The notes below the pieces were generated by a model. That model was not told where the DNA came from, searched no databases, and saw nothing but the letters and a program-made list of their open reading frames with translations. The translations under genes were made by a program, and so were the position numbers. From sequence record NC_074653.1: 18,212 nt of DNA; one strand, given 5' to 3'. How positions within the stretch are numbered: position 1 is the stretch's first letter; each line of letters opens with the position of its first letter. This document shows positions 1 to 18,212 of this stretch, piece after piece.

Positions 1-55
1 CCCCCTCGCGCGCACACAAAGCCCCCACGCCGGCCTCTCAAACACGGCGGGGCCC
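1..55 (+). repeat. Left inverted terminal repeat (55 bp)
   Basis: Exact reverse complement of 18158-18212. The match breaks at base 56 (A vs G). Confidence 0.99.
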
Positions 56-328: not shown

Positions 329-376
329 CTTTAAGTTTAGCAAGATGCGCTTTATAAGTGTCCACTTTTTCCCCAC
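329..376 (+). repeat. Degenerate inner inverted repeat, left copy
   Basis: 39/48 ungapped identity to the reverse complement of 18090-18137. The first 15 bp (CTTTAAGTTTAGCAA) are exact. Confidence 0.9.
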
Positions 377-441
377 CAACGTCAAGTTTTTCCCCGACAA
401 CGTCCACTTTTTCCCCAACAACGTCAAGTTTTTCCCCCAAC
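360..441 (+). repeat. Four tandem ~21-bp iteron-like repeats (ABAB pattern)
   Basis: GTCCACTTTTTCCCCACCAAC (360), GTCAAGTTTTTCCCCGACAAC (381), GTCCACTTTTTCCCCAACAAC (402), GTCAAGTTTTTCCCCCAAC (423). Confidence 0.95.
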
Positions 442-486
442 TTAGTTTCCGCTTTTCGCGCCGTGGGGTGTTTATTCCTACTAAAA

Positions 487-494
487 TATAAATA
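487..494 (+). promoter_or_regulatory. TATA box of the helicase gene
   Basis: TATAAATA starts 28 nt before ATG 515. Confidence 0.65.
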
Positions 495-514
495 TAAGCT
501 TTTGCTGGGTTTTT

Positions 515-2092
515 ATGGGTTCTAAAAAAAGAAGAGAAGCGGCCGAAACCGAGGCCCTCACGGAGGCCACCCAACTCCCCGTAAATGACTCATTTCTCTC
601 TTCATTGCCAAGCTCAGTCTGGTTGTTAAAGAATTGCCGACTGGGATATAAAAGTATTGAGTGTCCATATGACATTAAGATCCATGTTAGGTGGTTTGAG
701 GACTACGTGGCTGTTAGCATAAACGGCGAAAAAGTCAAGCTGACTTATGAGGACTTCTATTCCATTGTCACGGGCGCTGAATATACAGTTAAACAACTCA
801 ATTGGGCCCACAAACTTGAGGTGGGAGATGAAGTGGTGACAGCCACCCCATGCTGGGATAGGAGTGGAAACCGCTTTTTTGTTATTAGGTATAACAATGA
901 CACTACAGACAGAAAGCCGATAATTACAAAGGGCGATACCATATTTATGCCAGGGTTCAACGCTAGCTTATGTCCACAGTATCGATATATCCGTGACGCC
1001 ACGGAGGAGGAGTTCAAAAAAGTCAACGCGGACCTCCTAAAGAATATGTCCCACCTCCCCAGCGATATCAGACACGCAATATACTATGCAATTATCTATG
1101 GTTTCGCGGTCCCACTGTCAGAACAAAGGCCCATTTTGGGATTATGGGGCCCTCCTGGAATAGGAAAGACCACGATACTGAAACTAGTGGCGGCTTTCCA
1201 TAACGCCTACATTGTTGAGGGGTACAGCCCAGCTAGCATAAGAAACCTACTGACATGGCAAAATGTTATTGCTGATGACGTATTAGAGTCCACTAGCGCT
1301 GAAAATATCCCTCAATTAACTGACTTGATACTGGCATATTTTAATAGACACGTGACCGCCAGAGTCTACACGACAAGTGCGTTTAGGAGGTTCTACACCC
1401 GCGGATCCCTATGGATGGCTGGGGCTAATCTCTTAGAAATTATCAACTATCGTGAGGGAATACCTAGGAGGTTACGGTTATATGGTTTGTTTAAGAAAGT
1501 CACTCCTGCAGACATTAACCATATATACAAAGATATAGAGTACTACATGGCGTTAAGCTACATAGTAGTGCCTAAGAAAATAATTGCTTTAGACGTGATA
1601 CTTGGGGACGTCTCAACGCCTACATCTCTATTGCTAGATACCGCTATGAGTATAGTGGGAATGTATGCCGATGCAGAACAGAAATTTGAGGAGACCTATG
1701 AGACGCCGCATGTGGAGTCCCATATTGTTTCGCTATTGCAGAGAACAATAAAGCAATTGAGAAAAGCGAAAGCCGCCCCAAAATACGCCAAGCCGCCCTA
1801 TCTCATAGTATTCTCTAAAGCCAGTAACATTCCCAAGCGCATTAGCACTAAGGCTATCATAAACGAGGACACTAAGGTGGTAGACGGTAAGCTAGTCAAT
1901 GTCCACAAGGTTTCTAGGGAGGCCCAAACATATACCACCGAAGAGCTTGTGAAGATATTCCGCTCTTTAGGTCTCCCGCTAGAAATCAAAGATAAGGCGG
2001 TTGTCGTGGAGGACACTAAGCTTGAGGAGGCTTTGCAGATAGCGTGTATGCGCTTACAAGACATGGGAGAGACGTCACCATATTGCCAATAG
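515..2092 (+). CDS. AAA+ ATPase, D5/P4-like superfamily 3 helicase (525 aa)
   Basis: Walker A GPPGIGKT (aa 212-219) preceded by SEQRPILGLW, Walker B VIADD, motif-C/sensor-1 SLWMAGAN, Arg finger GIPRRLRL. Confidence 0.85.
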   Translation: MGSKKRREAAETEALTEATQLPVNDSFLSSLPSSVWLLKNCRLGYKSIECPYDIKIHVRWFEDYVAVSINGEKVKLTYEDFYSIVTGAEYTVKQLNWAHKLEVGDEVVTATPCWDRSGNRFFVIRYNNDTTDRKPIITKGDTIFMPGFNASLCPQYRYIRDATEEEFKKVNADLLKNMSHLPSDIRHAIYYAIIYGFAVPLSEQRPILGLWGPPGIGKTTILKLVAAFHNAYIVEGYSPASIRNLLTWQNVIADDVLESTSAENIPQLTDLILAYFNRHVTARVYTTSAFRRFYTRGSLWMAGANLLEIINYREGIPRRLRLYGLFKKVTPADINHIYKDIEYYMALSYIVVPKKIIALDVILGDVSTPTSLLLDTAMSIVGMYADAEQKFEETYETPHVESHIVSLLQRTIKQLRKAKAAPKYAKPPYLIVFSKASNIPKRISTKAIINEDTKVVDGKLVNVHKVSREAQTYTTEELVKIFRSLGLPLEIKDKAVVVEDTKLEEALQIACMRLQDMGETSPYCQ

Positions 2093-2121: not shown

Positions 2122-3045
2122 ATGTCTCAAAGACTCATCTTCTTTTTGAGCGCGTTTTCAATTGTCTATTTCACGCTCTTTAGCGGAAACCTATACCTTG
2201 ATTTAGTCATGTGGTTTATGGTTGTCATCTCCACCATATATGCGGCCGAAATATCCATGGCTTTATCTAATGCACGGCTGTGGTATAACGTCTTAGTCGT
2301 TTCTATGGCTATGTCATTGCCTCAGACCTTATTTGCCATAAAGCTAGCCAGCAGCGGGAAATATCTAGCTTCATGGATAGACACGCTGGGGTCCACGCTT
2401 GTTGACGCTATGCTAGTGACAGCTGTCCTTAGGAGGTACGTTATCGGCTCTCCCATGATATGGAATATGGTACCATTCTTGATAATGTGGTCCATGGCGG
2501 CTCTTTATGTCAACTATCACGCTTATGCTATCACCTACGGCCTTTTCAGACTCCCTGAGTGGGTGATAGTGGTAATTGGTATACTCCTCCCAATGGTCCT
2601 AGTGAGGCCCACGGGACTACCCCGTAAGAGCGAACTCATCATGTTGTTACTACACGCAGTTTCTACTGGGGTGTCCTCATACCAACTGTCCAATGTAATT
2701 GCGCAATTGCCTATCCATGAAATACAGCTAGGAATAGTGGCCACCATCCTTGCCACACTGCCAGACTTCTTAGTGGCCCTAATTATACGGAGTGCTGTGG
2801 CGAAAATCCTCAACGAGGTGGCCTCCGAGGAGGAGGCGTTAGCCACAATGCTAGCGTCCGCGGTTCACGACCAAATACTTATCCCAGCGCTAGTACTCAC
2901 ATTGTACCCGGAGGTGGCCGCTTACTATCCACACTATTTCAATGTCATAATTATCCTCCTCAAATTCACGCTGTTATTCCGCAATGTCTACTGGCTATTC
3001 GGCGTACCCTTCACCATCTTCTTGTTGTTAATGCCTCCCGTGTAG
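2122..3045 (+). CDS. CaCA-family (Na+/Ca2+ exchanger-like) membrane transporter (307 aa)
   Basis: Polytopic hydrophobic protein with two alpha-repeat-like motifs: SLPQ...LGSTLVD and TLPD...LASAVHD. Start moved from 2044 to ATG 2122, which avoids overlap and sits 25 nt after TTTTAA. Confidence 0.75.
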   Translation: MSQRLIFFLSAFSIVYFTLFSGNLYLDLVMWFMVVISTIYAAEISMALSNARLWYNVLVVSMAMSLPQTLFAIKLASSGKYLASWIDTLGSTLVDAMLVTAVLRRYVIGSPMIWNMVPFLIMWSMAALYVNYHAYAITYGLFRLPEWVIVVIGILLPMVLVRPTGLPRKSELIMLLLHAVSTGVSSYQLSNVIAQLPIHEIQLGIVATILATLPDFLVALIIRSAVAKILNEVASEEEALATMLASAVHDQILIPALVLTLYPEVAAYYPHYFNVIIILLKFTLLFRNVYWLFGVPFTIFLLLMPPV

Positions 3046-4754: not shown

Positions 4755-5486
4755 ATGGCTCGACTACAAGGAAACGCCAAAAGACCAACGTGGCTAGCTG
4801 CGGTTATTGTGGGCCTCATAATTCTGTTAGCCTTATGGGCCTACTTACTACCTAAGGGCGGTTCAGGTGGCGGTGGTGGCGGTGGTGGAGGTGGTACTAC
4901 TACTACAGCCCCAATGCCAGCGGTGTACCCCACGGGCGATATTTATAACGGATACAACTTAATCCTCTTAGAGGATTTTGTTAACCCTAACGACTATCAA
5001 ATTGTCGTGTCGGCTTTCGGTGAATATTCCAGTATACCCGTTTACGGAGGGTCTGGGGTACAGGGAAACATTACGCATGAACAAGCTTACCTAAAATACG
5101 GAGGCTTTAGTATCCCAATAATAGCAATTGCCTCCACTAATTCAACACTTAAACAAGACTTTCCTGGCATGCAAATACGCCTAGACACTAGCGGCGGCTA
5201 TATCCTCTACACGGCGCCTAATCTAGCTATCTACTACAGACACATGGCTTTCAACGTGAGTGGTACCACGGTCCACGTGTGGGCCCCAGCGTCACAACTA
5301 CCTCCACAATTATCGGGCGCCTCTCACCACGTGACGATAGACCCCGCTAACGGAGTGGCTTATGTTGACGGCATGCCTGTGAAGTTAAGTACAGGTGTTG
5401 CACAGCCTCAGAGGAAAGGAGTACTACGTGCGTGGCTTGTCATGACAAGCGTGCCAGGGACCTATACGTTAACCATTAATCCATAA
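4755..5486 (+). CDS. Membrane-anchored surface/virion glycoprotein with poly-Gly linker (243 aa)
   Basis: N-terminal TM helix, GGS-G10-T4 linker, beta-rich ectodomain, sequons NIT, NST and NVS. Confidence 0.8.
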   Translation: MARLQGNAKRPTWLAAVIVGLIILLALWAYLLPKGGSGGGGGGGGGGTTTTAPMPAVYPTGDIYNGYNLILLEDFVNPNDYQIVVSAFGEYSSIPVYGGSGVQGNITHEQAYLKYGGFSIPIIAIASTNSTLKQDFPGMQIRLDTSGGYILYTAPNLAIYYRHMAFNVSGTTVHVWAPASQLPPQLSGASHHVTIDPANGVAYVDGMPVKLSTGVAQPQRKGVLRAWLVMTSVPGTYTLTINP

Positions 5487-18089: not shown

Positions 18090-18137
18090 GTGGGGGAAAG
18101 GCGGATATTTGTAAAACACATTTTGCTAAACTTAAAG
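18090..18137 (-). repeat. Degenerate inner inverted repeat, right copy
   Basis: Reverse complement is 39/48 identical to 329-376 and ends in one iteron-like unit. Confidence 0.9.
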
Positions 18138-18157: not shown

Positions 18158-18212
18158 GGGCCCCGCCGTGTTTGAGAGGCCGGCGTGGGGGCTTTGTGTG
18201 CGCGCGAGGGGG
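18158..18212 (-). repeat. Right inverted terminal repeat (55 bp)
   Basis: Exact reverse complement of 1-55. Confidence 0.99.

Follow-up and report, generated by a model that had tools for sequence, protein, structure and literature searches.

The poxvirus D5 protein, mpox E5 and C962R (AsfvPrimPol) of African swine fever virus (ASFV) are superfamily 3 (SF3) primase-helicases that carry an N-terminal archaeo-eukaryotic primase (AEP) domain, a D5_N collar and a Pox_D5-type C-terminal domain. Phage P4 alpha and the other P4-family primase-helicases are built from D5_N, DUF5906 and Pox_D5 domains (TIGR01613), and P4 alpha also contains a zinc ribbon and a Toprim primase. The iterons to which P4 alpha binds through its C-terminal domain lie in its own ori and crr (the repeats are annotated in the P4 record); plasmid and P4-type replicons typically have iterons next to the gene of their initiator. 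Papillomavirus E1 and polyomavirus large T antigen are primase-less and depend on the host replisome. Here we compare these systems with gp02 of Pyrobaculum spherical virus 2 (PSV2), a member of the Globuloviridae. The window, i.e. the whole stretch of DNA that was analyzed (18,212 bp), is the complete linear genome of PSV2, identical in sequence to MN876845.1; the host is Pyrobaculum arsenaticum, and the 32 annotated genes all lie on one strand. The gp02 coding sequence, found alike in the open reading frame (ORF) list, its translation and the GenBank annotation, runs on the plus strand from an ATG start (515..2092) and encodes a globulovirus SF3-like ATPase of 525 aa. This frame is PSV2_gp02 of MN876845.1, labelled 'ATPase domain-containing protein' in GenBank. 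We consider it likely that gp02 belongs to the SF3 helicases as a very divergent member that lacks a primase and has a core of the D5/P4 type, and that it probably serves as the initiator and replicative helicase that recruits the host replisome.

Because the PSV2 paper already describes gp02 as a "ClpB-like" AAA+ ATPase, reading it as an SF3 protein is a reinterpretation of a published annotation. The HHpred survey of that paper gave functions to no more than a handful of proteins in PSV2, with no replication protein among them; according to the same paper, 98% of globulovirus proteins have no database match, PSV2 encodes no polymerase or primase partner and its origin is unmapped. A literature search that did not cover the paper describing TSPV1 (Thermoproteus spherical piliferous virus 1) found no SF3 helicase or other replication protein assigned to globuloviruses. 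The helicase activity of gp02 and its role in replication are what we infer: we call it a replicative helicase because of its fold, its position in the genome and the lack of any other replication gene, and it would recruit the host replisome because the virus encodes no polymerase or primase of its own.

A word-indexed search for homologs of gp02 returned only relatives of at least 79% identity, even with the family alignment as the query; these close relatives (79-89% identity) came from hot-spring assemblies. TSPV1 GP1 was matched by tblastn at 27% identity, and a metagenome scan identified 15 TSPV1-like contigs with a homolog; in the near-full-length ones (15-21 kb), the matching ORF begins approximately 0.5-0.8 kb from a contig end. 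When 1.84 billion representative proteins were searched exhaustively with a profile, only 15 clusters (50% identity) emerged, each of 435-594 aa, and these take in ORF1 of Thermoproteus tenax spherical virus 1 (TTSV1; identical to family member P0013) and a 78% relative of ORF582 of Pyrobaculum spherical virus (PSV). Scans of IMG/VR and GTDB with the PSV2/TSPV1 alignment gave no matches. The gp02 family is universal among the isolated globuloviruses because homologs were found in all four of them, PSV2, PSV, TTSV1 and TSPV1, near the left terminus in each case, as they also were in the 15 metagenomic contigs. PSV ORF582, TTSV1 ORF1 and TSPV1 GP1 are all labelled hypothetical in their annotations. 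We see gp02 as a left-end hallmark gene of all Globuloviridae, with N- and C-terminal domains specific to the family.

Motif conservation was read from a 20-sequence alignment of the globulovirus ATPase family, with gp02 residue numbering throughout. Five residues, K218, R243, D255, E258 and G297, are invariant in the 20 sequences, and G212, T219, S238, A240, D254, R278 and R296 are nearly so. The Walker A motif, G212-PPGIGK218-T219 (1148..1171, plus strand as for all gp02 features), follows the predicted strand 207-211 and has the GxxxxGK[T/S] form of D5/P4 SF3 proteins; G217 and K218 were present in 20/20, and the P-loop was matched in Pfam and the PDB. Walker B, V251-I-A-D254-D255 together with E258 (1265..1288), has its second aspartate in every sequence and D254 in 19/20, with a glutamate in P0011, and the distance from the Walker A lysine to the Walker B aspartate is 34-40 aa across the family, in keeping with the hhhhD[D/E] form and the spacing of about 35-45 aa seen in D5/P4 SF3 proteins. 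A B'-like region follows (1346..1405), comprising R278, a predicted hairpin (281-284/290-293) with R283, and R296-G297. Position 283 is basic throughout (18 R + 2 K), R278 is kept in 18/20, and the region aligns with the 'GD.i.aR..ky' block of D5/P4 in hhalign, suggesting that gp02 has the basic beta-hairpin between Walker B and motif C that is characteristic of SF3. Motif C, or sensor 1, is S298-LWMAGA-N305 on strand beta4 (1406..1429; predicted strand 299-303), with the asparagine at position 304 or 305 in 15 of the 20 sequences and at 305 in gp02. Finally, R318-R319 (1466..1471), just before strand beta5 (320-324), is a putative arginine finger: position 319 is R or K in all family members (19 R + 1 K), 11-14 residues past motif C, and the pair aligns with 'SRRRVII' of P4 alpha and 'rR..i.pf' of the D5 profile. 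The original prediction had been made from such peptides, all of which are present in the protein (YGFAVPLSEQRPILGLWGPPGIGKT at 195-219, VIADD at 251-255, VTARVY at 280-285, SLWMAGAN at 298-305 and EGIPRRLRLY at 314-323), and K218, the residue it had named for a mutant control, is the Walker A lysine.

The motif C and arginine-finger pattern, "hhhhAxxN ... RR hhh", fits not only D5/P4 proteins but also the second-region-of-homology motifs of Lon/Clp AAA+ ATPases, and because the same block fits both, a motif match by eye does not discriminate between them. The site where Clp and Lon proteins have an aromatic pore loop (beta2-alpha2) has no conserved aromatic residue in the globulovirus family, since the column of residue 237 holds a tyrosine in only 4/20; what is conserved around it is S238, A240 and R243. 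No conserved sensor-2-like arginine was found in 330-400; in that neighborhood only K327, just before, is conserved.

The structure of gp02 was predicted with AlphaFold2. A first run with 13 sequences from two clades gave a mean predicted local distance difference test score (pLDDT) of 38, and the 20-sequence alignment, used without templates, gave a pLDDT of 74.6 and a predicted template modelling score (pTM) of 0.65. The model has a beta-rich N-terminal part (56-146), two helices leading into a core of the additional-strand catalytic-glutamate (ASCE) type, helices at 331-389 and a C-terminal alpha/beta part (403-516). The core strands are beta1 207-211, beta2 231-234, beta3 250-253, beta4 299-303 and beta5 320-324, in the order beta1-alpha-beta2-alpha-beta3-alpha-[hairpin]-beta4-alpha-beta5, with the helix 262-277 preceding the hairpin 281-284/290-293. 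Foldseek returned 163 PDB matches at E <= 0.001, and our rankings refer to the best 50 of these. In that set, 47 chains were D5-type SF3 primase-helicases from five independent proteins (ASFV PrimPol (C962R), vaccinia D5, mpox E5, SaPI5 Pri-Rep and the NrS-1 helicase region; E 6e-7 to 3e-5), the other three being MCM2 (ranks 7 and 28) and RavA (rank 38); no Clp or Lon chain was among them. In BFVD, past the virus's own entry and TSPV1, nearly all named matches were Toprim/D5-like primase-helicases, from phages or giant viruses, with E 1e-11 to 6e-7. The nearest neighbors of the predicted model in both databases are therefore almost all D5-type helicases.

The position of MCM2 in this list bears on another explanation, in which the virus took gp02 from its archaeal host and the protein belongs to an MCM- or Orc1/Cdc6-like initiator clade of AAA+ proteins rather than to SF3. 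Two family members also have weak ORC-CDC6-like matches in Pfam (E 2e-4 and 5e-3), which cover the P-loop only, 18-28 residues, and stay under the gathering score. SF3 proteins outnumber and outrank MCM in the PDB and BFVD, no match to an MCM OB-fold or winged helix was found, and neither the search of 1.84 billion representative proteins nor a scan of genome contigs revealed a cellular homolog. We regard capture of such an initiator as very improbable.

Searches with single sequences were uninformative. When gp02 was compared with Pfam, PHROGs, NCBIfam and the PDB, nothing but approximately 25-50 residues around the P-loop was matched, always under curated thresholds and by unrelated NTPase families, and a hidden Markov model (HMM) of the family likewise matched PDB, Pfam, PHROGs and NCBIfam entries at the P-loop only. 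After the single-sequence searches, both readings of gp02 still depended on motifs compared by eye. BLASTP of gp02 against P4 alpha gave no match. A homolog search with P4 alpha returned only sequences of at least 89% identity, unusable for a profile, and the D5/P4 profile was built from 11 diverse P4/D5-like phage proteins spanning D5_N, the ATPase and the C-terminal domain. With hhalign, the family aligned to this profile at 95.5% probability (P 1.5e-8, score 74.2) over 132 columns that begin in the helix preceding Walker A and extend to beta5, with all motifs in register; leaving out one sequence at a time gave 94.2-96.1% throughout, and a reversed D5/P4 profile gave P 0.84. Among single D5-like sequences, 10/11 aligned in register over 112-164 columns. 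In contrast, the single E. coli controls ClpB, ClpX, FtsH, HslU, RuvB, RavA, DnaA, an ABC ATPase and RecF aligned over 18-34 P-loop columns only. The scores of the two groups overlap (22-52 for D5-like, 25-44 for controls), so that alignment length alone separates them. These results agree with the claim of the original prediction that the motifs follow the D5/P4 order: they are co-linear with that family and conserved in the globuloviruses, not a chance resemblance. Its central claim, that gp02 is an SF3 protein of D5/P4 type rather than a chaperone-type ATPase, finds computational support in both kinds of check that it had proposed, the predicted model with its hairpin and D5-type neighbors and the profile comparison, in which Lon reached 83% and ClpB the P-loop only.

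Several observations weigh against this assignment, and some of them favor an AAA+ remodelling ATPase of the classical or HCLR clade, similar to ClpB or Lon, that would act on proteins rather than DNA by threading or remodelling them, for instance while the nucleocapsid or envelope is assembled. Lon alone among the single controls aligned beyond the P-loop, and for that reason we built a Lon profile of 81 sequences; it covers the whole core of the family (137 columns, P 8.6e-6, score 49.5), with a 25-residue gap required between Walker A and Walker B. When the P-loop was masked, D5 (P 3.5e-4) and Lon (P 4.3e-4) tied on the motif C to arginine-finger block. The sequences thus favor D5/P4 over other AAA+ clades, with a modest lead. 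Furthermore, in a sub-profile of the PSV2 clade, residues 432-506 (1808-2032 in the window) aligned to the helical lid of Lon including sensor-2, with 'SREAQ' opposite 'TREAG' of Lon; run at full length, this match scored 59.6, and the isolated piece scored 25.0 (P 0.005), whereas column shuffles averaged 13.2 and reached at most 21.0. We take this as weak evidence for the Clp/Lon alternative: the match was found neither in the 20-sequence family profile (P 0.1) nor in any other clade, and it lies 108 residues past beta5 in a stretch that AlphaFold2 predicts as a beta-hairpin (pLDDT 55-59). Against the Clp/Lon alternative, ClpB, ClpX, HslU and FtsH were confined to the P-loop, the conserved aromatic pore loop is lacking, no Clp or Lon chain appears among the best 50 of 163 PDB matches, and the 34-40 aa between Walker A and Walker B are few for that clade by what is generally known of it. 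In its favor, the HHpred search in the PSV2 paper gave ClpB-like proteins as the best matches of gp02, at 99.6%. A remodelling ATPase seems to us quite unlikely.

There are further points against a D5/P4 helicase. The curated D5/P4 models (Pfam PF19263, PF08706 and PF03288; NCBIfam, including its P4-family primase C-terminal domain; PHROGs) did not match gp02 up to E 0.01, and one of the 20 family members matched DUF5906 at E 0.022, under the cut-off. The motif C asparagine is replaced by tyrosine in the PSV-like clade (P0016, P0018) and by glutamate in P0017, P0019 and P0020. The AlphaFold2 model is based on 20 sequences only, MCM2 stands as high as rank 7 in its PDB list, and its TM-scores are low (0.25-0.43), which means that the structural match concerns mainly the ATPase core and adjoining helices and not the whole protein. 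The flanking domains showed no sequence similarity to D5_N (P 0.53) or Pox_D5 (P 0.43) in hhalign. Even so, most core features of SF3 were found in gp02, namely Walker A, Walker B, the predicted hairpin, the putative arginine finger, the structural neighbors and the profile similarity. Because curated D5/P4 HMM membership is lacking, we name the group the 'SF3, D5-like helicase family of globuloviruses', and do not call it a Pfam D5/P4 member.

Outside the core, gp02 has several further parts. The N-terminal beta-rich domain (residues ~30-150; 602..964) has predicted strands at 56-146 with a pLDDT of ~63-87 and no catalytic motif; P112 is its sole invariant residue besides M1. The N-terminus gave no match in Pfam, NCBIfam or PHROGs and contains no primase motif, as the original prediction had stated, and we consider it a candidate DNA- or origin-binding domain, or a collar. 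Predicted helices at 156-201 (980..1117) lead into strand beta1 and include 'YGFAVPLSEQRP', which aligns with the 'GY.L.G....Q' helix of D5/P4; the hhalign alignments begin at query 198-200, or at 182 for two single sequences. Past the ATPase core lies a helical region (331-400; 1505..1714), with helices predicted at 331-389 and low confidence at 363-400. The C-terminal domain (1715..2089) is predicted to comprise a basic helix (403-420) and an alpha/beta part (424-516), with a pLDDT of 78-92 except at 440-470. The C-terminus had been described as basic, and this holds for residues 401-450 (11 K/R vs 1 D/E; pI 10.9); it does not hold for residues 451-525, which are acidic (pI 4.9).

We propose the following molecular mechanism for gp02 as a D5-like helicase. 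Six subunits would form a ring, with ATP held at the subunit interface by K218/T219 of Walker A and D254/D255/E258 of Walker B, and with N305 acting as sensor 1, while R319 would reach in from the neighboring subunit as a trans-acting arginine finger. The hairpin that follows Walker B and precedes motif C, with R278 and R283, would line the central channel and pull single-stranded DNA through it, presumably in the 3'-to-5' direction as in other SF3 helicases. The N-terminal beta domain, the basic C-terminal region or both may recognize viral DNA, and plausible targets are four 21-bp repeats upstream of gp02 or the terminal repeats of the genome. The helicase would then open the origin and bring in the host replisome, in the manner of polyomavirus large T antigen and papillomavirus E1.

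The four repeats, TTTTTCCCC at 366, 387, 408 and 429, are direct and in phase (358..441) and lie 74 bp upstream of the gp02 ATG. The array is the top tandem repeat of the genome (Tandem Repeats Finder score 116), its phasing is exact, and two relatives (85-89% protein identity) keep degenerate copies. In PSV, ORF582 is preceded at a distance of ~210 bp by a 22-bp x 3.2 array, and TSPV1 and TTSV1 have no comparable array at that upstream position. The 21-bp repeats are candidate iterons, an origin or an operator, and their link to gp02 as iterons is suggestive only. Between the array and the gene lies an A/T-rich box, AAAATATAAATATAAG (483..498, plus strand), 17-32 nt upstream of the gp02 ATG and conserved in the relatives. 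Judged by what is generally known of archaeal promoters, it is likely the TATA box of a leaderless or near-leaderless gp02 transcript. The upstream region 200-514 has a mean identity of 89% with the two relatives and is probably a conserved control region. The annotated reading frame ORF01 (276-491, 71 aa, GTG start) was considered as a gene here and rejected: it overlaps the repeats, would encode a repetitive 'FFP.NV' peptide and is not called in the two closest relatives, in which a 1-nt indel breaks its frame. It is probably not a gene.

The left terminal inverted repeat (1..55) is 100% complementary over its 55 nt to its partner at 18158-18212, and a 55-bp PSV2 terminal inverted repeat is also given in the PSV2 paper. 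A second, imperfect inverted repeat of 48 nt (81%) lies inside both ends, at 329-376 and 18090-18137; its right copy is 76-123 nt from the terminus and its left copy continues into the 21-bp array. Both ends could share it as a promoter element or as a binding site. The cumulative GC skew of the whole window climbs near-monotonically, from -0.05 to +0.52, with no turning point. Together with the genes on a single strand, this fits transcription or replication, or both, from the left end, and the two are not separable. Elsewhere in the genome, gp08 contains a short glycine run encoded by a GGT/GGTGGCGGT repeat, with the triplet repeated x10 (window 4866-4895).

A more speculative extension, which we put forward tentatively, is that the left end of every globulovirus might be a compact replication module, in which iteron-like repeats are combined with an SF3 helicase-initiator that has no primase but has an origin-binding domain of a kind not seen before. 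If so, this orphan family would be tied to the ancient pool of SF3-helicase replicons that includes plasmids, phage satellites and large eukaryotic DNA viruses, and the host replisome would copy a linear genome with terminal inverted repeats by starting at an internal origin that the helicase defines.

An SF3-like fold could also serve a job other than replication, such as condensing the genome or loading it into the helical nucleoprotein, translocating DNA at the membrane together with gp03, transcription or recombination. The adjoining gp03 (2122-3045, 307 aa) encodes a multi-pass membrane protein, with nine transmembrane helices according to the PSV2 paper. Across globuloviruses, it is far better conserved (39-51% identity) than the ATPase (17-30%), and every globulovirus, like contig L119, keeps its homolog beside the ATPase gene or close to it (3395-4336 in L020, 2034-2975 in L119 and, on the minus strand, 2935-3960 in L002 and 2681-3631 in L021). 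This proximity, the unmapped origin and the lack of an encoded primase or polymerase partner would suit a non-replicative role. However, the gp03 homolog lies on the strand opposite to the ATPase gene in TSPV1 and TTSV1, and two genes intervene in TTSV1, which argues that the pair is not an obligate operon; no packaging ATPase of the FtsK/HerA type was among the best 50 of 163 PDB matches. To our knowledge, characterized SF3 helicases serve genome replication, and the Rep proteins of adeno-associated virus have been reported in genome packaging too. A non-replicative job for gp02 appears unlikely.

The Globuloviridae are among the least understood viruses, and reading gp02 as an SF3 helicase unites it with PSV ORF582, TTSV1 ORF1 and TSPV1 GP1 as one family and corrects the published annotation. 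The Globuloviridae gain a hallmark gene, a first candidate replication protein and a testable model of genome replication, with a thermostable and easily expressed protein at its center. The work also shows that, where searches with single sequences fail, a family alignment of modest size can be enough to rescue both structure prediction and profile comparison, and the 15 clusters of homologs surfaced only through an exhaustive profile search.

Compared with the known systems, gp02 has its best predicted-structure neighbors in D5, E5 and C962R. It has in common with them the order Walker A, Walker B, hairpin, motif C and arginine finger, at 8-16% sequence identity between the helicase modules, whereas the primase, collar and Pox_D5-type domains of those proteins are not detectable in gp02 by sequence. 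The ATPase core of P4 alpha and the P4-family proteins is in register with that of gp02, and the gp02 gene, like the iteron-bound P4 alpha, is adjoined by repeats; the flanking domains of P4 alpha are unrelated to gp02 in sequence, and the curated HMMs of the P4 family do not detect it. SaPI5 Pri-Rep and the helicase region of phage NrS-1 match gp02 with E 3e-6 to 2e-5 and TM-scores, normalized to the target, of 0.29-0.40; unlike gp02, they are bacterial and fused to primase or polymerase domains. Lon- and ClpB-type AAA+ proteins have the AAA+ core and a similar sensor-1 and arginine-finger block in common with gp02 and differ in their longer Walker A-B spacing and aromatic pore loops. With papillomavirus E1 and polyomavirus large T antigen, which have different origin-binding folds, belong to eukaryotic viruses with circular genomes and are not among the best 50 of 163 PDB matches of gp02, the likeness would be one of logic: a DNA-binding domain joined to an SF3 motor that works with the host replisome.

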